DNA of 64,000 bases from Rebecca billardiae RCC1528 (lineage: Eukaryota; Protista; Haptophyta). The notes below the pieces were generated by a model. The model saw nothing but the letters and a program-made list of their open reading frames with translations, ran no database searches and was not told the origin of the DNA. The position numbers and the translations under genes were made by a program. Positions within the stretch are counted from its first letter, which is position 1. Each line of letters starts with the position of its first letter. Below, piece after piece: positions 1,940 through 30,375 of the stretch. The stretch spans positions 2,108,001-2,172,000 of the forward strand of contig OZ251227.1 of NCBI GenBank assembly GCA_965240325.2. Reading direction: 5' to 3'.

Positions 1940-2686
1940 CGCTCGTGTCATGCCTGATGACCATGACTTCGCGTGCACCAGCATTCACCGTGCCGTCAGC
2001 ACGGCAGCACCGCCGTCGCCCTGGGGCAGCCTTGAGCCTGCGGGACTGGCGTCGCACTGCACGCACGTTCAGCACTGCCAGGCTGTCAGTCGCAGTATCG
2101 CACTGCGCACGGCGCACGCAGTGACTGCAGCCGAATCGCACGCGCCAGCCGCGTGAGGCGCCGGGGCGCCCGCGCGGCGGTACGCGTGACGCGCCCCGGC
2201 TCATTGATGACAGATGATTCGTCGGTGACTCAGATTCAGAAGTTCAGAACGACGTACACTCTCAACGTGAGAGAATCCGACTACGAGTCAGACAGAGTTC
2301 GACAGTGACGGACGCCCACCGCGGCCACCGCCCAGGAGGCCCACCGTCGCACGACCGGCCGGGACTCGGAGGCCGGCCCATGCAGGCCTGCTAAGCGGGC
2401 AGCGCTAATATCGTCATGCACGTATACTGCTATACTGACACTCTGGGCTCCGGCTTGATGAATGATGGCGATGCGCGTCGCGGGCGGGCCGGGCGGCCCG
2501 CCGGCGGGCCGCGGGCCGTGGGGCCCCTGGTTTTCATTCAGCAGATTTTGGGGCGGCCGCCCGCGGGCCCGCCGTCCGAGTTCGGGGCGGGTCGGCTATA
2601 TTCGTCGTGAGTAGTACGTCAGCATCTCGCGTCGTCATGATGTGGGCGGCCGAGGTTGTCGCCGCACTTTAACAACGGTCTCATCA

Positions 2687-3520
2687 TCAGATACCATCCG
2701 CCGAGCGGAGCCGATCGAGCACTGCTGCTGTGCGCGCCTGTGCCTGGGCGACCTCGCCATCAAAGCGCCCACGAAACCGCCTGTGCAGCCCCTGCTTCGT
2801 GCGAGGGGTGCGCACGAGGACAGACGGGGGCCTGAGCTCGCCGTGCTCATCGACCATCTCCAGCGGCACGCCATCGCGAGGGCCGAACGCCGTGCCGTCA
2901 ACGTCTGACACCAGGTGCACGAGCGTCGAAGCATAAGCACCCGCGTGCTGCGCGCGAAACGCCGCGCTGGGCCCCAGCATCGTGCGATCCACGATGCCAC
3001 CGTCAACAAGCACGTGGCCATCGCGCACGATGGGGACGAACATGCGCGGCACTGCGCAGGATGCGGCAATCGCGTCGAGGAGCGAGCCCTCCGTGATGAG
3101 CACAGTCTCCTTGGCGCCCTTTGTGACCGTGCCCACAGCGAGAGGGACCTTGAGATCGGCAAAGGTGGTCGGCAGCACCCCTGCAAGGCGCGCGCACAGC
3201 GCGTCGGAGGTGAACATGCCACGCCACGGCTTGAGCGACGGGCGGCACAGCGAGATCGGTCGCTGCGCACGGAAGACGTCCGTGATCTCGTCAGCGCTCA
3301 GCCCAGCCGCGAACATGGCGCCCACAATCGAGCCTGAACTCGTGCCGACGATCGAGCGGACATTGCGGGCTGCGTCGTGCTCTTCAAGGGCGCGGAGGAC
3401 GCCCAGGTGGTTGGAGAAGCACAGGAAGCCCGAAGAGAAGACCACACTCGTCACCGCCCGCGCTGGCGGGGGCGTGCTCATGCAGACGAGCAGCGCTAGC
3501 ATTCGGGAGGGTGCCGCCAT
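2687..3520 (-). CDS. Patatin-like phospholipase with signal peptide
   Basis: Gly-loop variant FSSGFLCFSNHLGVLRAL, nucleophile elbow GTSSG, catalytic DGG. Confidence 0.88.
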   Translation of the reverse strand: MAAPSRMLALLVCMSTPPPARAVTSVVFSSGFLCFSNHLGVLRALEEHDAARNVRSIVGTSSGSIVGAMFAAGLSADEITDVFRAQRPISLCRPSLKPWRGMFTSDALCARLAGVLPTTFADLKVPLAVGTVTKGAKETVLITEGSLLDAIAASCAVPRMFVPIVRDGHVLVDGGIVDRTMLGPSAAFRAQHAGAYASTLVHLVSDVDGTAFGPRDGVPLEMVDEHGELRPPSVLVRTPRTKQGLHRRFRGRFDGEVAQAQARTAAVLDRLRSADGI

Positions 3521-3631
3521 CGTGGTACAGTATCACCACCGACAGCCGACCGGCCGCGGATCACGTGCCGCGTGAGCGCTGCAAGCGCATCGGCGTGCGG
3601 CGGCGTGGGTTCCTCGGCCGACGCCAACGGC

Positions 3632-4996
3632 ATGTCGGCGCGATTACCCACCGGCGCGACGCGTGCGTTGGTGGGCCGCTTGTTCGAGCAGGCTGTGGGC
3701 GTGTGCGAGGCCCTCGCTGGCAGAGCTCGCGCTTCCCTCCCCATTGCGGACACCACCGCCCTTGTCCCGGTCCCGCCCTCTACTGAGGTGCAGGCGCAGC
3801 GCACAGAGCTCCTGAGCAGGGTCGCCTGCGATCGTTCGATCGCATGCGAGGAGACGGTGGTGCGGGAGCTCGACGAGCAAGTCGGTGCTCTGATCGCCGC
3901 CCCAGTGCCGCCGGCTGCCGAGGACCTCTCCGAGCGCGTGCTGCACAAATGGTGCGCGGCCAACCGAACTGTGCTCTTCCCGCGGACGCCGTATCTCTTC
4001 GCGTACGAGTGGCAGGTGGGCTCTGGGACCGATCAGATTCAATTCAAAGGCGATCTCTTACTCTGGGACGGCTCGCACACTTTCACCGCGGTTGAGTGCA
4101 AGTACCTGAACGGCAGCGGGACCAGCTCGTACAAGACGAACAAGCTGCTGTCGCAGGTGTCCGCAGCCGTCGCCGTGGCGCCTGGATTTCTCAACTTGCT
4201 CCGCGCGGCCGACTCAGACGCGAGGTTCTCGATGCTGGCCGAGCGCGAGGCCCTGCCGGCGCCTACCGGCTGGACCGCCGCCGTGGGCTCTGCGCGGTTC
4301 CCCTGGGAGTACCCGCGCGGGCTGCTGCAGTACCTGGACGAGCGCATGCAATTTCCGCGCGTGCACGGCCTCTTCGTCACAAACCGCATGGATGCGCTGA
4401 GCGAAGAGCCCGGGGGGCTGTTCAGCTCGGAGCACCTCCCCGAGAGCTGCAGGAAGGTGTGCCAGGCCTCGTACGACGCGTTCAGCCAAGCTGCCGGAGT
4501 CGTCGCGCCCTCGGAGTGCGACACGACGCTGAGCCGCAAGCTGGCGCTGAGGACTCTGTATGGCGGGGCCGCGCGCGCTGTGGCGCACACGGCGACGGGC
4601 GGGCAGGGTGATCCCGATGAGTCGGAGGCAACAGGTGATAGCGGCGAGGGTGACGACGACGAGGGCACGTACCCCGCTGTGGAGGAGATGGTGCGCAGGG
4701 GCGTGGCGGCGCTGCAGCGAGCTGACGGCGGCCCGATCACGCTGACCGAGCTGCGCCTGGCGATGCTCCCCGGACACACCAACGGAGCGTTCAAGAACGT
4801 CCCGCTATTGCGCGAAGAGGAGCTCGAGCGCTTTATGGGCGCGCAGGACGCCGCGGAGCTGCCGGAGCCGCGTTTCATGCAGTTCAAAGAATTCCTTCTT
4901 TCGGAGGGGCCGTTCGTGATTGACAACATCAACTATGTGCGGCTGGACAACGCAAGAGCAGCTGTGGCGAAAGCCCAGGGCCAGGGCCGACGGTGA
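3632..4996 (+). CDS. Hypothetical protein with a PD-(D/E)XK nuclease-like motif
   Basis: Intronless ORF of about 454 aa; YEWQV...KGDLLLWDGSHTFTAVECKYL at about 4004-4107. Confidence 0.6.
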   Translation: MSARLPTGATRALVGRLFEQAVGVCEALAGRARASLPIADTTALVPVPPSTEVQAQRTELLSRVACDRSIACEETVVRELDEQVGALIAAPVPPAAEDLSERVLHKWCAANRTVLFPRTPYLFAYEWQVGSGTDQIQFKGDLLLWDGSHTFTAVECKYLNGSGTSSYKTNKLLSQVSAAVAVAPGFLNLLRAADSDARFSMLAEREALPAPTGWTAAVGSARFPWEYPRGLLQYLDERMQFPRVHGLFVTNRMDALSEEPGGLFSSEHLPESCRKVCQASYDAFSQAAGVVAPSECDTTLSRKLALRTLYGGAARAVAHTATGGQGDPDESEATGDSGEGDDDEGTYPAVEEMVRRGVAALQRADGGPITLTELRLAMLPGHTNGAFKNVPLLREEELERFMGAQDAAELPEPRFMQFKEFLLSEGPFVIDNINYVRLDNARAAVAKAQGQGRR

Positions 4997-5260
4997 TCGG
5001 ATCTCACTGGCACCTGACATGTCACACAGCAGCTGTCACTTCGTCGTCAGCGATCAGCAGGGTGATGCGCAGATATCGCGATACTACTGTACTGCTACCG
5101 TGCTACAGAATAACGTGACTAGCTACTACTCTTGTTCTAGCATCAGCATTCCTTTGTCAGCAGTATGTATCCTTAAGACGACTGTACAACTATGGGGCTA
5201 TACAGTACAGTCTGTACAGTACAGTACTCTGTACTGTACGTGCAATCTGCATGCGACCTG

Positions 5261-6874
5261 ATGACGGCAGCGCCAATGAGAACGATGGCGACGGGCTCGC
5301 CCCGCCTCGGCCGTCTCGTCGCCCTCGCCCTCACCCTCCTCGCCAGCGCCCGCGCGCTCGGCGCCCCGCCGCCGCCTGCGCCCCGCCGCGGCCAGTGCTT
5401 CCGGCCGGCTGGCGCAGCGCCGCCGCCCACCCCGGCCGCCGCCGCCGCCGCCGCCGCCGCGCCGCCACCCGCGGCCGCCCGTGCCTCACTCGGCCGGCGG
5501 TCGGCGCTCTCGCGCGCGAGCGCAGTTGCCGCGGGGGCGGCGGCGGCGGCGGCGGCGCCGGTCCCCCTGGTGGCCCCGGGCGGGTCCGCAAGCGCGGCCG
5601 TCGGCCCCGAGGCGGCGTGGCCCCTGTGGCCCGCCCTGCCAGTGTTCCCCTACGCTCGGCGCAAGACGATCCGCCGCGAGGTCGGCCCGGGCGTCTGGGC
5701 CTTCGACCAGCTGATCGGCATCTACTACGTGCACGTGCCAATCCGCATGACCGTCGTCCGCCTCGACGCCGGCGGCCTCTTCGTTTACGCCCCCGTGGCC
5801 CCCACCAAGGAGTGCCTCGCCCTCCTCGCGCCCCTCGTGGCCGCGCACGGCCCCGTGCGGTGCATCGTACTGCCCTCAGTCGCGGTCGAGCACAAGGTGC
5901 TGGCGGGGCCCTTCGCCCGCGCCTTCCCCGACGCCGACTTTTACGCCGTGGACCAGCAGTATTCGTTCCCCGTCCCCCTGCCCGGCCGGTTCCTGGGCCT
6001 GCCGCGCTGGACCAAGCCCCTGCCCCGAAGCGGTGCCGGCCTGCCCGGCGGCGGCCTCTGCGGCGGCGAGCTGGCGCACGAGGTTCTGACGGTCAAGCCC
6101 GGTCCGGGGTCCTTCTTCCAGGACGTGGCCGTGGTGCACCGCCCGTCGCGCACCCTGCTGATCTGCGACGCGGTGCTCGGCGTCACCGACGAGCCCCCCG
6201 CCATCCTCACCAGCGACCCCGAGTACGTGCGCGCGCTGCTGTTCCACGCGCGAGATGCGCCGACCGAGCAGGTGGCCGACTCGCCGGCCGCGCGGCGCAA
6301 GGGCTGGCGCCGCATCGTCCTCCTCTTCAACTTCTTCATCCCGGGCGCCACCCAGGCGGACGTGGGCCTCGGGCCCCTGGGGCGCCTCGATCCGCGCTTC
6401 CCCCTGGGCTGGGGCGGCTGGCAGCCCTTTGCGTGGCGCGCTGACGACGAGGCCGAGAGCTTTGCGCGCTACAGCCGCGGCGGGGCGCCCACCCTCCTCC
6501 CCATCGTGCAGATCATCCTCGCCCGCGGCGCGGCGGATGGCTCCGTGGCGCGCTGGGTGGACGCCGTGAGCGCCTGGGGCTTCGACCGCGTGGTGCCCGC
6601 CCACCTCGACGCGCCCCTTGCCGCGGGGCCCAGGGAGTTCGCCGCCGCCTTTGACTTTGTCCGCGAGAAGGGCGAGCTCGCGGCGGGCAACGCGGTGCGC
6701 TTCTGCGACGAGGACGTGGCGCTCCTCCGCGAGGCCGAGCGCGGGCCCCTCGCCTTCTCCGTGGGGCCGACGCCCCTCGGCCCGCTCCGCGGCGAGCCCT
6801 GCGGCCTCGGCGGGGGCGAGCCGCGCGTCGTCTCCCGCGAGCTCAACCTCCGATGGACGCCGCCGTCGCCTTGA
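5261..6874 (+). CDS. DUF4336-family (metallo-beta-lactamase-like) protein, probably plastid-targeted
   Basis: WPLWPALPVFPYARRKTIRREV...DQLIGIYYVHVPIRMTVVRL...APVAPTKEC, EHK, and WGFDRVVPAHLDAP; N-terminal signal peptide followed by an Ala/Pro-rich presequence. Confidence 0.85.
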   Translation: MTAAPMRTMATGSPRLGRLVALALTLLASARALGAPPPPAPRRGQCFRPAGAAPPPTPAAAAAAAAAPPPAAARASLGRRSALSRASAVAAGAAAAAAAPVPLVAPGGSASAAVGPEAAWPLWPALPVFPYARRKTIRREVGPGVWAFDQLIGIYYVHVPIRMTVVRLDAGGLFVYAPVAPTKECLALLAPLVAAHGPVRCIVLPSVAVEHKVLAGPFARAFPDADFYAVDQQYSFPVPLPGRFLGLPRWTKPLPRSGAGLPGGGLCGGELAHEVLTVKPGPGSFFQDVAVVHRPSRTLLICDAVLGVTDEPPAILTSDPEYVRALLFHARDAPTEQVADSPAARRKGWRRIVLLFNFFIPGATQADVGLGPLGRLDPRFPLGWGGWQPFAWRADDEAESFARYSRGGAPTLLPIVQIILARGAADGSVARWVDAVSAWGFDRVVPAHLDAPLAAGPREFAAAFDFVREKGELAAGNAVRFCDEDVALLREAERGPLAFSVGPTPLGPLRGEPCGLGGGEPRVVSRELNLRWTPPSP

Positions 6875-11889: not shown

Positions 11890-12004
11890 CTTGCGGGTTG
11901 CTGCCGTTTCAAGATGCTTAGAATTTAGATGCGCGTCTTGCGAGATCGGGATCTCCTCCGGCCGAGGGCGTTGAGTCAAGGGTGCGCTGGGGGCGCGAAG
12001 TCCC

Positions 12005-14583
12005 ATGAGGAGCCCCCCGGCTCGCGATGCCGGCTCGCCCAGCCGGCCGCGGGTGCCGGACGACATCAGCGTGCACTCGTCGCTGCCCTCAGCCGACTCG
12101 GACGACGATGGCCACTCCATCGACGGGCTCGACCCGCGCCGACTCCACCGCATGCGCCGAGAGGCGAGCCGCGCGCTGCAGGGGCCGATCGAGAGCGTGC
12201 CCAGCGAGCAGCGCGCCGTGCCGGTGCGCGAGCTCTTCCGGGACCTGGGCGAGGTCTTCGCGCGACGCGCACCGACGCCGGATCAGCTCGCGATCGCGCA
12301 GCCGGTCGAGGCGTACGACTACTTCTGCTCGCACGCGTGGGCGGAGGGGCGGCAGTACAAGCTTGCTGCGATGCTGTACCATTTCGCGCTGCCGCCTGCG
12401 CTCGTCGCCATGGTGCTGGCGTCGCACCTGGCAGCGGCGCTGTGGGCAGCGGGTGTGCTCCCGACCATGCTCACCGACGTGTACTGGCCCGACATGACCG
12501 ACCAGCCCGTCGCCGTGGGCTTCTACTGCCAGCTGAGCGCCCTGGTCGCCTTTGTGGTGACGCTCTGCCTCTGGCCGGCCGCGCACGAGCTCGCCGCGTG
12601 GTTCGGCGTGGTGGCGCCGATCAACGTCTTCATGGACAAGGTGCGCGCGCATGCGCGGCGCGCGCGCGCACGCGTGACAGCCCATCGTGCTCGCCACGCC
12701 CCTCACGCCCCACTCGTCGCGCGCGCGCGCGCCCGCGCCCCTCGCTCCCCTCCGCCCGGCTCGCCACCGTGTCGGGCGCGCGCTCGGCACAGCTGTGCAT
12801 CGACCAGCTGGACGTGCGGCGCAAGGTGAAGGGGATCGACCAGATCGGCGGGTTCCTGGCGAACTCGGAGCGCATGCTCGTCCTGTGGTCCCCCCACTTC
12901 TTCGAGCGGCTGTGGTGCTGCTTCGAGGTCGCCGTCTTTCTCACGCCGCCGCCGATGGCCGCGCCGCCGCCCAAGCGGTCGGGGGCCCGGGGGGTGCGCG
13001 CTGCGCCGAGCTCGGCGCCGGCCACGCCGAAGGAGCTGGGCGCGGCCGGCGCGGATGAGCGGGCGCACGGACACCGGCTCGCCGCGGACGCGGCCGCCGA
13101 GCCGCGTGGGCCGCTCGGCGTGCCCGCGCCGTCCTCGACTCTGCCGCCCGCTGGCGGCGGCGGCGGCGCGGGCGCTCGGCCGGCCGAGCTGCCGCCCGTG
13201 GCGCGGCTGCCTCCGATCACGCTGCCGGCGCCGCCTGCGCCGCCGCGGGAGGAGGAGGAGGCCCCCACGGCGCAGCTCAGCGACTCGGTCCCCGCCTCCC
13301 CCGCCGGCTCGCGCGCGACGACGCCGCGCGGCTCCTCGCTCGCGTCCCCGCCCACGCTGGAAGGGCCGCGCGCACGCGCACGCGCGCCCAAGCCCGCCCT
13401 CGCGCCGTGGGTGGTCCGACGGCGGAGCGGCGGCAGCGAGAGCGGCCGGCTGGGGCGCGCGCCGCACGCGCCCGAGCGGCAGCTCTCGCTCGTGCCGACG
13501 CAGCTCGCGAGCGCCTCGCTCATCGCCATCCCGTGCCTCTTCCTGGGCATGCACGTCGTGCTGTGGGCCGACTATGTCGACCTGGGCGGCCGGGCGGCGC
13601 CGGGGCTTCAGCTGCTCGCGCCCGCCCTTGGCGTCACCACGGCCGGTGCGATGGTCTCCAAGTTCGTGCGCACGTACGCGCACGACCGCTCGCAGCTCGA
13701 CGCGCAGCTCCGCGCGTTCCGCTTCGACGCCGCGTTCTGCACCGTGCCGCACGACCGCGCCCTTCTCCGCGCCGTGATTGGCCACCTGTACTCGCCAGGC
13801 GGCGGCGACGAGGCGGTGGGGGTGGCGAGGTTTGAGGCGGCGGTGCGCACGCGGCTGCGGCGGCACGTCGTGAGCTCGATCGGCGCCAAGTCGACGCTGC
13901 CGCTCGCGGCGACGCTCGCCGTGTGCTGCGCCGCGCACTGCTTCTACCTCGACCTCGTCGCCTCGCGCGCCGCGCTCCCCGCGCAGCTGTTCCCGTCGGC
14001 CGCCGCCAAGGCGCTCGACGTCCTCGCGGTGTGCTGCTACACGCTCGCCCAGTCGGTCGGAGCGATCCCGTTTGCGGGCGCGGGGATGGTGGCGCTCTCG
14101 CAGGCGATCCCGCGGCAGGAGACGCGGCGCGCCGAGCTCGCGGCGCACGCGCTGAACGTCGCGTTCGCGCTCCTCGTCGTCGTCGGCAACTACGTGCTGA
14201 GCGCGGCGGCCTTCTACCTCCTGCCGCCGGCCGCGTCGATCCCGCTCAATCTCGGGCTGGCCGTGTCGCTGTTTGTGGGCGCGACGCGGCGGCTGGACGA
14301 GCGGGGCGGGCTCGCGCTGCGCCTGCTCGCCGCGGCGGTCCGCCGCGTCGCGTGCTGCGCGACGCTGGACCTCAGGTACGAGTCGGCGACCGAGCTCGGC
14401 CGCGAGCACTCGTACACGGTCACGGAGGGCGGCGACGAGCCGGCGGCGGCGACGTCTCCGTGGTCGACGGACGACGGCAGAGGGTCGCCGGGCGGCGGCG
14501 ACCGGCCCGCGCTCGACGGCGGCGAGCGCGCGGATAGCGGCACCCCGCCCGCCTATGCGGCCAACGGCGGCTTTGGTAGGTGA
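12005..14583 (+). CDS. Membrane protein with a TIR-like domain interrupted by TM helices; exons 12005-12640, 12793-14583
   Basis: YDYFCSHAW, two TMs, VFMDK|LCIDQ across a GT-AG intron, MLVLWSPHFFERLWCCFE, then about 6 further TMs. Confidence 0.8.
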
Positions 14584-23363: not shown

Positions 23364-23543
23364 CTCGAGACGTGTGAAGCAAAGGAAGTGAAGGTCCCAG
23401 TGGGAGGGACCTTCACACGAGTCCGAGTTCGGCCGTGCTCCCTCGGTCTCCCAGGGCTTTCTCACGATTAAAATTCGTTTAAAGCTGTAGTGTTCAGTGT
23501 TCACCAGAATAATGGGTTTCCAGGATATAATATTGCCGTTGGT

Positions 23544-23710
23544 GTACAGTTTACTAAGAATAAGAGACGCACACAGCTCAGGCAGGCGAGATTAACGACG
23601 TGGTATGCAATAACCACTAATTAAATCTGCCTTTTGATCTGATGATCGAGGATGAACTACAGTTTACTTAAGAATCAGAGACGCACACAGCTCAGACCGG
23701 CGAGATTATT
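23544..23710 (+). repeat. Two copies of a dispersed motif, probably a Tc1/mariner-type end
   Basis: tacagtttact..aagaat.agagacgcacacagctca at about 23545 and 23658; variants at about 33355 and 44000. Confidence 0.6.
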
Positions 23711-23989
23711 TTGATGATCAATACTAACGATAATTATGTGAGTAGGCGAACGACTGAGTGCCAATCACCATGATTAATGATACTACTATTGGTTTAATCA
23801 CTTGGCTTAATTACTGCCTGTGCATATGCCCCTTACGGATGCGGTTCTCGGCGGCGAACACTGAAGGCGAATGACGAATCATGGTCCAGCTTGGTGGGTC
23901 CACGCACGAGCCCGCGTCCCCGCGAGCGGCTTTTACAATACTTACTTGGTAGGTGTGCGACGCTTCGGGCGAGCCAGGCGCTCTTTGAG

Positions 23990-26900
23990 ATGAGAGCGTT
24001 GCAGCGCGCGCTCGGGCTGGTCGCGCTCGCGCTTGCGGCGCGTCCTGTGCGAGGGGGCGTCCTCGTGCTGCGGGACGTGCCGAGCTGCTGCGCCAACCTC
24101 ACCCTGCTCGCCGAGCCCTTTGCATTTGCGAGCCGCGCGTTTGACGTGTCTGGGCCGCTCGTGCACGTCCCGCTTGCGGCCGCGAGCTGCCCACCGCGGC
24201 TAGAGGCCGATCGCGATGCGATCGCGGGGGCGCTCGTCATGATTGACGCGTCGCATGCTTCGCGGTGCTCGCTCGAGGAGCATGCCGCGGAGGCCGCACG
24301 CGCCGGTGCGGCCGCACTGCTGCTGGTGCACCCGTGGCGCGAGGCCTTCCACGTTGTTCCCGGCCACGCGGCACTCGCGTGGCGCCTGGCTGGCCGCGGC
24401 GCGGTGGCGGCCGCCGGTCTCCTGCCCGTCGTCGACATCCAGCAGCCCGAGCTCGCCGCGCTCGTCGGCGCGCTGCAGCGGGGCGAGCGCGCACACGCGC
24501 GCCTCACCGCCACTCCGCTCACGCCATCCGCGTGGGCGCGCATGCACGGCTCGGCCGCGTGGTCACTGTGGCAGGGCGTGCTCACGCTCGGCGCGCTGAC
24601 CGTCATCGAGCTCGCGGCGCTTCGCGTCGAGGCGTTCACCCGCGCCGACGGCGGCGTGCGCCTCAGCTCGATCCCGCAGCTGATGCTGCTGCTCGAGCTG
24701 GCCGCCAACGCGGCGCGCGCGGCGCTGCTCGGCATCGACCCAGAGCTGTCGCGCGGCCGGCTGCCGACGGAGGCGGCGTGCGCGCTGCACGCGTGCGCGC
24801 TGTGGCTCGCGCTCCTCTCCGCCGTGCTCTTCCTCCTCTACTTCTCGCGGCTCAGCACGTCGCAGGGCCTCGGCTCGCTCCAGCTCTCGCGGATCCCCGA
24901 GGTGCCCGAGGAGCGCGCAGCGCGCGGTGCGCTGTTGAGGGCGCGCTGCTGGGAGGCGCGCTCGAGCCCGCTGTGGCTCGCGCTCGTGATGCTCGCGGGC
25001 ACTGCGCTCGGCACAGCCGCGTGCGCGCTCTACGCCACGGAAGCGCTCATCACCCTGCTGCGGATGGGCTTCCTCTGTGTGGACGCGGCGGTGCTCGTGC
25101 CATGCTCGCTCTGGTGGGTGCGCACGCGCGCGCTGGCAAAGGCGAGCGCGCTCCCACGGCTGCTGTCGGAGCGGCTGACGGGGTCGATGCAGCAGATCGT
25201 GATCGCGCGCGTGGTCTCGCTCCTCGCCGGCGTCCCCGCGCTCACCTTCGCCTACTACACCCCGTGGGCGCGCTTCGCCCTGCTCGGCGCGCACGTCGCC
25301 GCCGCGCTCGCGGTGAGCCACGCGCAGTGCGCGCTGCTCCGGCCAATCGGCGTGCGCGTGCTGCGCGGGCCGCTGCGCCGCGCGCTGCTCGCGATCACGG
25401 ACGTGTGGAAGAGCCTGCTCCTCTGCGCGCCGTTCGCCGACGACGAGCTCAGGCCCGAGGGCAGCCCGGGTGGCCCGCGCAAGGCCAGCCTGCGGCTCAA
25501 GCCGCCGATCGTGGTCCGGGAGACCATCCTCGACTCCGGGCCGGTGCCGGCGCACCTGCTGCTCGGCGTCAGCCTCGCGATGATTGACGAGTTCATCTCG
25601 GCGCGCGAGATTCCGGAGGAGGCGACGACGCTCGAGGTGGCGCAGTCCATCCGGGAGCTGACGTCCTCGTCGGCCGGCTGGTCCATCGCCGAGATGTGCG
25701 CCGCTGCGCAGACAGCGGATGGCTGGCCCGCCGTCGCAAAGGCCAACTTGGTGCGAGCACGCGCGCGCCCCGCCGCCTGCGCGCCGCCCCGCGCGCCGGC
25801 TCGGCCCTGATGGCGCGCCGCCCCTCCCCTCCCCTCCCCTCCCCCAACCCCTCCCCCTGCCCGCAGTTCATCTCGCACGCGCAGTGCTGCTCGTTTGCCA
25901 AGATGCTCTCGGCCGTGGTGGCGTACCTCCGGATGCACAGGCTCGAGGCGCAGGGCACGTACCTGTGGCTCGACATCTTCTGTGCGCGCGGCTGTGCGCG
26001 CGCACCGCGGGCGGGCGGGCGGGCGGGGCTCACGCGGCCGCGCGTCCTCCGCCGGCCGCCATGCGCGCTCGCGGTCTCTGACGCCCACGCCCACGCGCGC
26101 GCGGCGCACGCCTCGCGCCGCCACGCCCCTCTGCGCTGCCCCTCCGCGCTGCAGGCATCCGGCAGCACGAGGTGGCGGCGGAGGTGGCGAAGATCGGCGC
26201 GATCGAGCGCTCCGTCGGCCGCGTCGCGATGGTGCTCGGTGCGCACGGCGCGCGCGCACCGCAGCGTGCCCGCGTGCTCGCGCCTGCGCCCGCACGTTGT
26301 TCGACTGCCGCGCGCGCCCGGCGCCCGGTGCACGTATGCGAGTCAGGCAGCCGGGCGACCAGCTGACCCGGCGCGCCCCACCCCGCCCGCGCCCGCGCCG
26401 CGCCGCCGCGCGCAGACCCGTGGGATGCCCCCGTGTGCCTCACGCGCGTGTGGTGCCTGTACGAGGTGGTGCAGTGCTGGCTGCAGGGCGTGCGCTTCGA
26501 GCTGACCATCGCGCCCGACGAGCGCGAGGCGCTGCAGCGCGCGGTGCGCACCGACCTGGCGCGCGTGCAGAGCGCGCTCTCCGCCTTTGACGCGCGCACG
26601 GCCGACGCGACCGTCGAGGCGGACAAGCAGATGATCAACGCGCTCATCTGCGCGCACTTCTCGCCGCTCGGCGCGGCGGGCCACGCCGAGGGCGCCGAGG
26701 GCGGCGGCGGCCTCGAGTGCAGCGAGGCCATGGAGGCGTTCAACACCGCGGTGCGCTCGATGATGCGCACCGCGCTCGGCGGCTTCCTGTGGGACGACAC
26801 GACGCCGTCCGCGGGCAGCCGCAGACGGACGGCAGGGCTGGTCGAGCGCGCGAGCGGGCGCGTGAGCGCCGGCTCGCGCTTCGACGGCATGGAGCTGGGC

Positions 26901-28403
26901 ACCGCCGTGGACTCGGACGACGACCTCGGCCTGAGCGGCGAGCTCGGCCTGATCAGGGAGGTGAGCCACCGGCGCAGCAGCGTCGTCTCGGTAGCGGAGA
27001 GCAGCGTGGGGCCGCTGGACGGCCGCTGCTCGATACTGCCGTGCACTGGCGCGCCTGGCACCGCCGTGGCCGCCGCCGCCGGCTCGGTGTGCAGCAGCAC
27101 TCTCACCAGCAATCTCACCTCGCCCCGCCAGCACTCCTCGAACCAGTCAGACGTGGGCCGGGCGAGCGGCACGGACGTGGGGCGGACGAGCGGCACGAGC
27201 AACTACTCGCTCCGCTCCAGCTTCAGCGGCCTCCTCCGCTGCCGCCCGCGCGCAGCAACAGCTGCGCGGATGCAGCCGTCCAGCCAGGCACTGCACTCGC
27301 ACCCGAGCGGCTCGATGCCCAATCTCGGCGCGAGCGCGGCGATGGTGGAGGGGCCACCGCGGCTCCCGTCCGAGCCCTCGATGGTGTCGGACCGCAGCAG
27401 CAGGCTCACACCCGGCCGGTTCTCGATGCGCGCGCGCAAGGCCAGGGTCGTGCCGCAGGGCGCGCCGTGGCCGCGCCCTGCGATCACCTTGACCGTGGCC
27501 AGCGCGCTGTACAGCGCGGGCGAGCGCAGCAGCAGCCACGCCTCACACTCGCGCAGCCCGTCCGACAACTCGCGCTTCGCGTCGCTGCCGATCAGCCAGC
27601 GCGCGAGCACGAGCGAGACACACTCGGGCCAGCACTCGAGTCGGTGGCTCTCGACGCGGCCTTCGACGAGCGCGTGCCGCTCGTCGCACTCGGGCTCGGG
27701 CGTGTGCCGCTCGTCGCACTCGGGCTCGGGCGTGTGCCGCTCGTCGCACTCGGGCTCGGGCGTGTGCCGCTCGTCGCACTCGGGCGCGTGCCGCACTTCT
27801 CGCGCGGGCGTGTACTCGTCGCAGGCGTCGCACTCGGGCGCGTTCTCGTCGGTGCACTCTGGCTCGTGGTCGTCGGTGGAAGTGTTCCACAAGCGCGCCG
27901 CGCGCAGCCACTCGTCGCTCAACACCTCGAGAGACTCGTCTCCGGCGCTCGGCCACGCGCCGTCGCTCCGAGCGGGCCGGGCGGGCGCGGCCTCTCCGGT
28001 GGGCTGGGGGCTCGTGCGCGCGCGCGTGCAAACGGCGAGAGACATCTCCACGCTGCGGACCGCGGCGCTCGGGCCGGCTGCAGACTCCAAGTCGGCGAGC
28101 TGCAACTTCGACAACTACGGCCACCCGGTTGCTAGCGCCATGCGGTCTCATGGACTGTCGCCGCCGACGCGCAGGATCGAAGGCCCGCCCGGCACCACGT
28201 CAGCGCGTTGCATGGCGTCAGGCGCGCAGCACGCCACGCCGCCCCCGCCGCCACGCGGGCCTGGCCTCAGCCCAGCATGCGCCCTCCCTCAGGCCCGCAG
28301 GCTGCCGCCCTCTGCGCTTCGCGGCACCGTAGCGTCCGCGTCGTCATCCGCATCAGGGCGGTCGACGGCCACCAATACCATCCGGCGTTCCACTTCCACG
28401 TGA
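23990..28403 (+). CDS. Signal peptide - PA-like ectodomain - about 7 TM - TIR-like domain - Ser-rich tail; exons 23990-25750, 25867-25981, 26155-26238, 26416-28403
   Basis: PA-like segment FDVSGPLV...IAGALVMI...CSLEEHAAEAARAGAAALLLV; seven hydrophobic segments; spliced product reads ANLFISHAQ...YLWLDIFCIRQH...MVLDPWDAPVCLTRVWCLYE; all three introns are GT-AG and frame-preserving. Confidence 0.82.
27672..27795 (+). repeat. 30-bp coding minisatellite, about 4 copies (CRSSHSGSGV)
   Basis: gtgccgctcgtcgcactcgggctcgggcgt repeated in tandem. Confidence 0.9.
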
Positions 28404-29551
28404 GCCGCCCAACGGCGGGGACTCCTCGCGGCGAGTGACGACGCGCGCAGATTATTACTTAGCGCTATTAGCGCGCACGTCGTATCGACTAGATCTCGTT
28501 CCGATTATAATAAAGCTAGTCGCGTAGTCTGCTTAGCACATTGACCGCAGCGCGCGTAGTACGCATGCCGTTACAGATGAGTGGCCCGCGCGATGCACGC
28601 GTCGGATCGACCGATGCTGATATAACTCGCTCTTATTCGTCATGACTTTCACGGCATGCATATAGTAGCGCTACTACCGTGCCTCTGCTATCAGGCTCGG
28701 GCAGCCCGTCAGCCGGACTCCGCCCTAGTCAGCACTACGGCTGCGGCTCGCGCGTACTGCTATAGCAGTCGCCATATTCATAGATCGTCATAATATACGT
28801 AGTACTACTGAATTAATTACTACACGTAACAGCGCTGAGCAGTGTAACTTGTCACGCTCGTCACTGGCAACACTCACTGCTATACAGTGCGCTGATGCGC
28901 TGCGCGCTGCTTATACAGCATTCAGCGGCGGCATACGCGCCGCGCCTGCTTCTATCGCGTCGCGTCGTGTGACGCGCGACGTATTTATGAAATGTTGCTA
29001 ACGACTCGGCACTGACGACATTGATGACCGATGCTCGTCGTCGCGTCGACTTGACTCACTGACTAGATACTGAGTCACTTGATCAGCGAGTGTCTTGACG
29101 ACTAGTAGTACGACTACTACGGGCGGACTAGTTACGTCAGCAGACAGCAGTCGTCACTGCGTCCGACTACAGTCAGAGTCAGTGAGCGAGTCGTAGTCGC
29201 ACTTCTGATGATGATGATGGCTGCTATATTCTCATTCTGCGTGACTACTGTACTTTACTGCGCTAAGCTACTCTCACTCTCACTCTCAGAAGACAGAAGG
29301 TACTCATCATCGCGGCGGATATATATTGACTGCGCTGCTGCTCGAAGGCTCGATCTGACGATGATCATTGATCTCTGCGCGTCGATCTAGTGAGACTCTG
29401 ACGACGTGTAGCGTAGTCGCATCAGCAGTAGCTGCAGTAGTGCCATCGAGAACCATGTCTGTGACGTACTCGTAACTCGGCGCCGGTAGCTTATTAGTTA
29501 GCAGACTAGTATAGTTATTATAGTCGTCGTCGTAACAGCACGAATAGTTTT

Positions 29552-29693
29552 ATCACCCTCCAACAGCCCTGAAGATCGCGCGCGTCCCCCGTCCCCTTTT
29601 TCTTTGATCAAAAGATCTGTTTTTGACAACGTAGTTAGTGAGGGCCCCCGGCGGGGCTCCACGCTACGCGCTCCGCCCTGCACCGCGGGCCAT
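29552..29693 (-). mobile_element. Isolated 5' end of the Helentron-like element found at 54618 and 57438
   Basis: Reverse complement of atggcccgcggtgcagggcggagcgcgtagc...gggctgttggagggtga. Confidence 0.85.
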
Positions 29694-30375
29694 GAGACTT
29701 ATATTCGTCATTCGTGGCGCTAGCTGGCATCCGCCGCCTTAACAGGCCTGCGTCGATCTTATTGAGACTCGTCATCTGATGACGAATGATGCTGAAGTGT
29801 CCGATATATTATCAGCAAGTGACACGAGTCGCATATCAATCATGCTCATCAGCAGTATTGCTGCAGTGTCAGTCAGTCATCAGTGTGAGTGGCTAGTGCT
29901 CTCAGTGCCCGATCGCGAAGTTTGTCAGTGTGACGTACTCGGCGGCGGTAGCTTTAGCTTAATGTTATAATTAATATATATATATTATATATATAGTAGC
30001 CATAGTTACTATTATCATAATATATATAATAATAGCAGACTTATTAGTTATTATATAGTGGTAACAGCACGAATATAGTTTTAAGACTTCGTCATTCGTG
30101 GCGCTGCTGGCATCCGATTCCGATTCCGCCTTGCCGCCCTTGCCTGGCTCGGCTCGCATCACACACCCAGCACGGGCCCGAGACGTCGCAGCAGCACCGC
30201 TGCAGCCAAACTAATGCCACGGTGGGTGCTGCCGCACAAGCCTGGTGGCTAGGTGAGGCGACAACGCGTGGCGCCGGCAGAGCGGACACGCATCGTGCCT
30301 ACTGTAGTGTACTTGTAGCGTTGTCGCGCCGGCTTGCCTCGTCAGGGGCGGCGGTGCGCGCCGATGGCGCAGGGC

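Follow-up and report, generated by a model that had tools for sequence, protein, structure and literature searches.

We report a gene of the haptophyte Rebecca billardiae RCC1528, at 23990-28403 on the + strand of a stretch of 64,000 nucleotides (the window: contig OZ251227.1, assembly GCA_965240325.2, positions 2,108,001 to 2,172,000; positions below count from its first letter), whose predicted product joins a protease-associated (PA) ectodomain, seven transmembrane (TM) helices folded as in G-protein-coupled receptors (GPCRs; this part is called 7TM below) and a cytosolic TIR/HET-like domain in a single chain. That these three parts make up one gene we hold to be highly probable. The gene comprises four exons and ~1315 codons, with a candidate catalytic Glu near residue 670 by codon count; its cytosolic part, referred to here as the effector domain, is a TIR/HET-like domain of a family that has no Pfam model.

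An initial annotation, made from the letters alone, had placed a gene with three introns here and the motifs FISHA and WLDIFCIRQH in its exons, and both the gene and the motifs were found where it had put them. The unspliced frame of exon 1 meets a stop at 25808-25810; all three introns are short, with a guanine plus cytosine (GC) content of 83-85%, donors reading GTGCG(A/C) and acceptors reading CAG. Searches of the source genome (72 Mb, 41 contigs) used single window exons or an intronless paralogue as queries. This C16 paralogue (G000:C16; L044:2963-6844) has 1294 amino acids, is 45% identical over exon 1, and carries PA, 7TM and effector domain within one uninterrupted frame, which runs over all three junctions as A-T-L-F-V-S-H-A-Q...F-L-W-L-D-L-F-C-I-R-Q-H-E-V...V-V-M-V-L-D-P-W-D-A-P-V-C-L-T-R-V-W-C-L-Y-E; exon 4 of the window gene, read by codon, opens P-W-D-A-P-V-C-L-T-R-V-W-C-L-Y-E. 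In alignment, the four window pieces tile the C16 effector domain end to end with only two split codons between them; the family hidden Markov model (HMM) matches the four window exons consecutively (positions 9-78, 77-118, 116-143 and 144-259); and tblastn matches break at the same three positions of the domain in the window gene and in its closest paralogues (C1, C11). Given the intronless paralogue, the exon tiling, the ordered HMM matches and the shared tblastn breaks, we read the region as one spliced gene: comparison of the predicted sequences confirms the three introns, and the TM and TIR-like parts lie in one gene rather than in two separate ones.

The open frame of the C1 paralogue was also considered as an intronless proxy and was rejected in favour of C16, as it proved to be intron read-through without stops. 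In this closest paralogue (L043; G000:C1:4419500-4429499, minus strand 2369-6841) an open reading frame (ORF) of 1490 codons (open frame, 1501 codons) crosses all three introns stop-free, so that in a genome of 75% GC an unbroken frame is no evidence for the absence of introns.

The chain begins with a hydrophobic leader (core at amino acids 8-26), in keeping with the signal peptide first proposed. Pfam family PF02225 (PA) scored 22.0 bits on exon 1 by hmmscan (residues 53-114), under its 23.9-bit cut-off, and 26.0 bits at 24146-24331 in a six-frame search of the genome, above the cut-off; a relative in Diacronema lutheri, P0062, also exceeded it at 26.5 bits. This weak PA match was the only one obtained with Pfam on single exons, which are too short for the effector domain. 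Foldseek with the N-terminal part of the exon 1 model returned the PA domains of ZNRF3, RNF43, GRAIL, VSR1 and aminopeptidases (E 3e-4 to 5e-3, probability 1.0). The PA profile match is borderline and the PA fold is clear in the predicted structure, and the PA-like domain of the initial annotation is upheld. The ectodomain holds four Cys, of which Cys67 and Cys93 are invariant in the family, and an N-x-T sequon (NLT) at amino acid 36. Elsewhere in the genome, a 4125-codon frame at G000:C14:2070083-2075926 (+) carries three strong PA domains (70-75 bits) and is unrelated to the receptor family.

Exon 1 was modelled with AlphaFold2 (AF2), with 10 paralogues and 5 relatives from elsewhere as the input alignment, giving a mean predicted local distance difference test score (pLDDT) of 77.6 and a predicted template modelling score (pTM) of 0.73; pLDDT was <50 at residues 482-524, in a poorly conserved linker. 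The seven hydrophobic segments noted initially appear in the model as seven TM helices (189-220, 228-249, 260-290, 326-347, 351-385, 390-419 and 425-449), followed by a helix 8 at 461-479. When model residues ~180-459 were aligned with solved structures by VIA-align, the class A GPCRs P2Y14, CB1, GPR3 and MrgD scored Z 17-18 over 232-250 residues, with a root-mean-square deviation (rmsd) of 4.1-5.0 Å (~4.3 Å and 240-250 residues for many of the class A structures), and the class F receptors Fzd7 and SMO scored Z 16.4-16.7; the alignment is a re-ranking of the top 1000 Foldseek chains, and its scores exceed the caution line of Z 13 for helical bundles. Family-conserved positions of the 7TM part are a Glu in TM1, an Arg in TM2, D-P after TM2 and P-W before TM7, and an R-P-[IL]-G...R-G-P-L motif is conserved after TM7. 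In the topology drawn from the model, Lys and Arg number 21 in the segments predicted to be cytosolic and 4 in those predicted to be outside. Taken together, the loop charges, the leader, the invariant Cys and the sequon indicate that the PA domain faces the exterior or a lumen and that the chain beyond helix 7 is cytosolic; the N-out, C-in orientation, with the C-terminal domain cytosolic as originally supposed, is thus supported by the model. A genome search for G-alpha (PF00503) found one place over the cut-off, G000:C32:945181-945435, and this only with neighbouring pieces summed; six further places were weaker and partial, covering the switch region only (profile positions ~168-262). The G-protein complement may be small beside 48 PA-7TM loci.

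The effector domain spans ~250 residues, from L-L-L-G-V-S (~25550) to G-G-F-L-W (~26798). Its N-terminal helical part has one invariant Gly and is also present in relatives that consist of the domain without the receptor part; throughout the family exon 2 keeps an H and a D without exception, and F, V/I and W with few exceptions. HMM positions 116-143 fall at 26154-26237 (exon 3), and positions 144-259 match exon 4 with an E of 1e-38. In 46 diverse relatives the R, W and E of R-x-W-C-x-x-E never vary, and in another 25 the same holds for G, D, W and E. The local pattern of the domain, W-[LI]-D-x-x-C-I-R-Q, is nearer to fungal HET, and the two sub-threshold HET matches with reported coordinates cover profile positions 44-75, the W-I-D-x-x-C-I-x-Q block; the outer HET blocks (strand A; helix C W-x-x-Q-E) are similar by eye only, in comparison with HET patterns. 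UniRef labels the Diacronema lutheri proteins P0006, P0007 and P0166 'Heterokaryon incompatibility domain-containing', and current Pfam models recovered neither family on relatives that UniRef names HET or RGS.

The window's own effector domain is split over four exons, and for this reason the domain of the intronless C16 paralogue was modelled in its place, by AF2 with a 12-row alignment; it is 54-61% (tblastn) or 56-78% (MAFFT) identical to the window domain. The model (pLDDT 90.1, pTM 0.88) has the element order bA-aA-bB-aB-bC-aC-bD-aD-aE, which is that of the TIR-type flavodoxin-like alpha/beta fold, with F-V-S-H on strand A, W-L-D on strand B, V-V-M-V-L on strand C and R-V-W-C-L-Y-E on helix C. 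Its best Foldseek matches in the PDB were TIR domains, weakly (E 0.02-0.7). An exhaustive alignment against 48,161 representative chains was headed by the SARM1 TIR (Z 7.1), RPP1, SpbK, MyD88 and IL-18R-beta, followed by nucleoside deoxyribosyltransferases, ThsB and SEFIR, which we take to be folds related to TIR. In a second structural look ~38 of the first 40 rows were TIR domains, with SARM1 at Z 7.5 (rmsd 3.7 Å, 118 of 139 residues) and next RPP1 (Z 7.1) and RUN1 (Z 7.0). It is this uniform list with its near-complete coverage of the TIR domain, not the height of Z, that makes the TIR assignment credible. Counted from the start of the structural alignment, the Glu stands at an offset of 86, against 81 for SARM1 E642 and 75 for RUN1 E100 (arithmetic from aligned ranges and entry titles). 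Other searches gave little: a single-sequence PDB search with the effector domain returned noise, and ESM Atlas scores of 0.76-0.78 (an oomycete cluster and a haptophyte H-NOX cluster) are leads only. The only profile match in the PDB, a T4-lysozyme fusion over a helical stretch (E 0.0086), was taken as chance.

The source genome contains at least 48 PA-7TM loci related to exon 1 of the window gene and 57 effector-domain loci found with the start of exon 4. An effector domain lies downstream of 35 of the 48 PA-7TM loci, on the same strand and within 6 kb; 22 of the 57 domain loci have no attached PA-7TM part. Numbers of this order put the architecture far beyond chance. The closest paralogues, on C1 (73% identity), C12 (69%) and C11 (66%), cover residues 5-587 of exon 1 and form with the window gene what is, by sequence comparison, a young subgroup. 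Mean identity in 11 paralogues is 38% for PA, 35% for 7TM, 16% for the linker and 48% for the effector N-terminal part, so conservation is lower on the sensor side of the protein than on the effector side. Rows L029, L036 and L009, which contain read-through introns, were left out of the alignment of the effector domain.

Beyond this genome, a profile search of 1.84 billion representatives yielded 5996 relatives at E<=0.001, and many of the best matches span the whole PA-7TM-domain profile. All named full-length matches are from Diacronema lutheri, a pavlovophyte haptophyte, and represent about ten distinct genes; conservation of the architecture thus reaches a second haptophyte. Among the family members are two MMETSP transcripts (641 and 850 amino acids), and the 641-residue one matches the profile from the PA region to the WCLYE block. 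In 29 of 46 diverse relatives the effector domain is combined with TPR repeats. Long TPR proteins of the chytrid Phlyctochytrium planicorne (P0048 and P0057, one of them named 'Kinesin light chain 3') carry an effector-type domain, and the family thus extends well beyond algae. A word search with exon 1 gave no match, probably because of its length window and the high divergence, given that the profile search found thousands. Two JGI contigs checked for poly(A) had none that could be seen and so are not called transcripts. By eye, the 1317-residue Logan protein call P0002 shows the same intron read-through as the six-frame C3 paralogue L009 (G000:C3:3107427-3112106), which indicates that reads of this or a very close species are already publicly archived and that the gene calls made on them take no account of splicing.

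NADase TIRs (SARM1; RPP1, RUN1 and RPS4; SpbK, ThsB and AbTir) are the best structural neighbours of the effector domain (Z 5.7-7.5 over <=134 residues) and have the same alpha/beta fold and element order. Strand A reads hydrophobic-hydrophobic-Ser-His/Tyr in both, strand B ends in Asp, and helix C of the window family bears W-C-x-x-E, with the Glu invariant; plant TIRs have W-C-x-x-E in helix C. The window family differs from them in its lack of a Pfam TIR match and its negative hhalign comparison with the TIR_2 of its own genome, and in its length: ~250 residues against ~140, with an extra N-terminal helical part of ~65 residues, longer helices B and D, and a C-terminal helix. With fungal HET (PF06985) the family appears to share the block W-[LI]-D-x-x-C-I-x-Q followed by a helix, a strand and R-x-W-x-x-x-E, and also the combination of the domain with sensor modules such as TPR repeats. 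It is sub-threshold for the HET profile, however; its strand A is F-V-S-H-A, whereas that of HET has the pattern Y-x-A-L-S-Y-x-W-G; and the sensor is a 7TM receptor here and a NACHT-WD40 or lectin module there. HET has been described as a remote relative of TIR with homologues in Haptophyceae (Dyrka et al., PMC4986451).

Toll-like and IL-1 receptors likewise unite in one polypeptide an ectodomain, a span of the membrane and, on the cytosolic side, a TIR-type domain, and share the logic that a ligand outside gathers the domains inside; they differ in having a single TM helix and leucine-rich-repeat or immunoglobulin ectodomains instead of PA and a seven-helix core of GPCR fold, most animal Toll-like receptor TIRs are scaffolds, and there is no sequence relationship to the window protein. 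ZNRF3/RNF43, GRAIL/RNF128 and plant VSR have the same PA fold in the ectodomain, but cross the membrane with one TM helix and carry a RING finger or a sorting tail, without 7TM core or TIR-like domain. Seven-helix receptors fused to effectors include Arabidopsis AtRGS1 and the Dictyostelium GPCR-PIPK. The 7TM-RGS proteins of Naegleria also join a seven-helix core to a cytosolic signalling domain in one polypeptide (PMC9283941); compared with all such fusions, the window protein differs in its TIR/HET-like effector and PA ectodomain. In another haptophyte, Gephyrocapsa (Emiliania) huxleyi, virus-responsive TIR genes have been described and proposed to encode receptors, in which an intracellular TIR with conserved Glu comes after an extracellular region or several N-terminal TM helices (2025, PMC12489294). 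Those proteins were identified with HHsuite on the basis of Pfam TIR families; the example shown has an ectodomain of leucine-binding/EGF-like type and a single TM helix, and no PA domain or GPCR-fold core is described among them (PMC12489294). Searches of open-access papers and bioRxiv found no account of a GPCR-fold or PA-7TM receptor fused to a TIR/HET-like domain.

We propose that the leader would be cleaved, leaving a binding domain of PA type to face the exterior or the lumen of an organelle, and that seven helices in GPCR arrangement would cross the membrane, continuing into an Arg-rich helix 8, a flexible linker and the ~250-residue cytosolic domain. A ligand at the PA/7TM part may alter the conformation or clustering of the receptor and thereby assemble the TIR/HET-like domains, and assembly would switch the domain on, as in TIR proteins. 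The active domain might work as an enzyme that consumes NAD+ or makes a signal by means of the invariant Trp-x3-Glu; alternatively it might seed the many soluble proteins of the genome that have the same domain. We lean, by a little, towards such a direct receptor-effector mode of working; that the effector domain specifically performs NAD+ chemistry is a more tentative proposal, on which we would not rely. Ligand gating, activation driven by oligomerisation, NAD+ chemistry and a role in immunity or cell death are what we infer for the protein, and each is put forward conditionally.

Several results weigh against this proposal or against the names of its parts. Scanned at E<=10, neither the window exons nor the paralogue domain matched any Pfam TIR family, and TIR was absent among the 25 commonest Pfam families when 25 relatives were scanned at E<=1. 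The hhalign comparison of the family with the genome's own TIR_2 gave a probability of 0.2, with a template of four sequences of which three are without strand A, and no defence TIR-type model of PADLOC matched. HET (PF06985) stayed below its 22.5-bit cut-off in every member tested (12.7 bits, E 0.16, for the L044 domain of the C16 paralogue; 13.7 bits, E 0.082, for P0001); the best HET E among 25 relatives was 0.0096, in one of the 25, and the HET profile found two weak places only on the whole genome, the best at 17.6 bits. How HET kills cells is itself still unknown (PMC10890737; PMC12881547). The effector model is a prediction for the paralogue, not for the window protein, and its structural Z of 5-7.5 is middling by the tool's scale; the offset of the Glu is consistent with the catalytic position and is not residue-level proof. 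On exon 1 no 7tm Pfam family was found at E<=1, and DRY and NPxxY were not seen in the exon sequence by eye, without a pattern search; coupling to G proteins is accordingly not predicted either way, and the 7TM core has the GPCR fold and lies outside every known GPCR family.

With no Pfam TIR match and a HET-like local pattern, 'TIR/HET-like' is the accurate label for the effector domain. The TIR-like domain of the initial annotation thus stands as regards its fold (in the paralogue model) and the invariant Trp-x3-Glu, and its name has to be widened; membership of the TIR family and NADase function are labels beyond the evidence, for which the domain is a candidate only. In the same genome at least 10 places exceed the cut-off for TIR_2 (PF13676), none of them at a PA-7TM locus, so that classical TIR and TIR/HET-like domains coexist there; these places include G000:C13:293189-293515, C5:1949398-1950210, C34:1015527-1015853 and C10:2301163-2301417.

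The same architecture could also act without catalysis, the domain being a non-enzymatic adaptor that recruits soluble TIR/HET-like proteins (TPR, H-NOX and other fusions) like-with-like, as animal Toll-like receptors recruit MyD88. The 22 unattached domain loci and the TPR combinations in 29 of 46 relatives would fit an adaptor, as would the TIRs of MyD88, MAL, TRIF and TRAM among the structural neighbours (Z 5-6.5) and the role of this kind proposed for HET by Dyrka et al. (PMC4986451); yet Trp-x3-Glu is invariant in all relatives examined, a constancy met more often in catalytic sites than in contact surfaces, and the neighbours that score best are the enzymatic TIRs SARM1, RPP1 and RUN1. 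We judge the adaptor unlikely, though more probable than an endomembrane protein that sorts cargo through its PA domain, as plant VSR/RMR do, with the helices as a mere anchor and the cytosolic domain serving trafficking or housekeeping. That explanation has to accommodate at least 35 divergent paralogues, with lower conservation in PA and 7TM (38% and 35%) than in the effector N-terminal part (48%), a pattern that resembles a diversifying sensor repertoire more than a housekeeping sorter, as well as a cytosolic domain common to H-NOX and TPR sensor-type fusions and a 7TM core that matches GPCRs at Z 17-18; despite the PA domains of VSR1 and of GRAIL/RNF-type membrane proteins among the structural matches, and the single candidate G-alpha locus over the cut-off against 48 PA-7TM loci, we consider it very improbable.

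An artefact, be it two adjoining genes, a pseudogene or chance frames in DNA of 75% GC, is largely refuted and would now surprise us greatly. High GC does yield long spurious ORFs in every frame, the long open frame of the C1 paralogue is nothing but intron read-through, and the window gene is known here from genomic sequence alone. On the other side, a single frame of the intronless paralogue spans the entire architecture, the exon pieces fit onto that paralogue exactly and match the family HMM in order, canonical splice sites stand at the three positions where tblastn matches break in the closest paralogues, and the family has relatives in Diacronema lutheri and two MMETSP transcripts. The features of the gene as predicted are collected in Table 1.

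Table 1. Predicted features of the PA-7TM-TIR/HET-like gene (window positions; aa, amino acids of the chain).
Feature	Position	Strand	Details
Exon 1	23990-25750	+	587 aa; ATG-opened ORF; leader, PA, 7 TM, helix 8, linker, effector N-terminal part
Signal-peptide-like leader	23990-24055	+	aa 1-22; hydrophobic core aa 8-26; AF2 low-confidence helix aa 2-15
PA (protease-associated) ectodomain	24056-24529	+	aa ~23-180; Pfam PA match 24146-24331
Seven TM helices, GPCR-like fold	24554-25336	+	aa 189-449; AF2 and structural alignment
Arg-rich post-TM7 segment with helix 8, then linker	25337-25549	+	aa 450-480; linker aa 481-520
Effector N-terminal helical part (LLLGVS...SIAE...)	25550-25750	+	family HMM positions 9-78 at 25541-25753
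Intron 1	25751-25866	+	116 nt; GTGCGA...CAG; phase 0; junction contiguous in intronless C16 paralogue
Exon 2	25867-25981	+	strand A F-I-S-H (25867-25878; FISHA), helix A, strand B W-L-D (WLDIF)
Exon 2 residues	W 25966-25968; D 25972-25974	+	strand B W-L-D
Intron 2	25982-26154	+	173 nt; GTGCGC...CAG; Cys codon split T|GC
Exon 3	26155-26238	+	(C)IRQHEV...GRVAMVL; helix B and strand C
Intron 3	26239-26415	+	177 nt; GTGCGC...CAG; Asp codon split G|AC
Exon 4	26416-28403	+	split-codon D then PWDAPVCLTRVWCLYE; stop 28401-28403
Exon 4 domain part	26416-26798	+	(D)PWDAPVCLTRVWCLYE, strand D, helices up to ...GGFLW
Exon 4 Trp / candidate catalytic Glu	26451-26453 / 26463-26465	+	W-x3-E pair
C-terminal tail	26799-28403	+	Ser/Arg/Ala-rich, low-complexity, open frame to stop 28401-28403
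30-bp tandem repeat in tail	27670-27785		3.9 copies, 98% identity; encodes C-R-S-S-H-S-G-S-G-V units

The C-terminal tail of ~530 residues is probably disordered. Alignment of exon 4 with the C1 paralogue ends at about amino acid 205, beyond which the tail cannot be aligned; the 3' end of the gene at 28401-28403 is predicted from the open frame. The stretch 23990-28440 is a block of 70-80% GC, after which GC drops to ~54%. The spacers at 23480-23990 and 28440-30000 have 47-54% GC against 70-80% inside genes, which is useful for marking gene ends. Pfam found nothing on six long neighbouring ORFs. The family profile also matches the window ORF 11929-14580 (+), with HMM positions 171-250 at 13627-13914, a weak further piece at 12886-12933 and a whole-sequence E of 6.8e-8, which points to another, more divergent gene ~10 kb upstream that carries this effector-type domain.

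Should the domain prove to be no more than a scaffold, or the protein to be a receptor for sorting, the gene would be an unusual but modest shuffling of domains. In the widest form of the direct receptor-effector reading, which we advance as a rather doubtful proposition, these proteins would be an unrecognised class of GPCR-fold receptors that bypass G proteins, the seven-helix core directly switching on a fused TIR/HET-type NAD+-cleaving domain, and the 35-50 divergent copies per genome would be a surface pattern-recognition repertoire of haptophytes, directed, for example, at viruses, bacteria or non-self cells; if this is true, ligands outside the cell would be tied to NAD+-derived signals or cell death. 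Innate immunity in bacteria, plants and animals alike makes use of TIR-type domains, and in this family a GPCR-shaped receptor whose ligand-binding ectodomain can be recognised is followed directly by a TIR/HET-like domain, in dozens of divergent copies. With the intronless paralogue as an easily cloned source of the domain, the family may offer a tractable test of whether HET-like domains are enzymes, of what a seven-helix receptor does without a G protein, and of how bloom-forming algae sense viruses and other cells.

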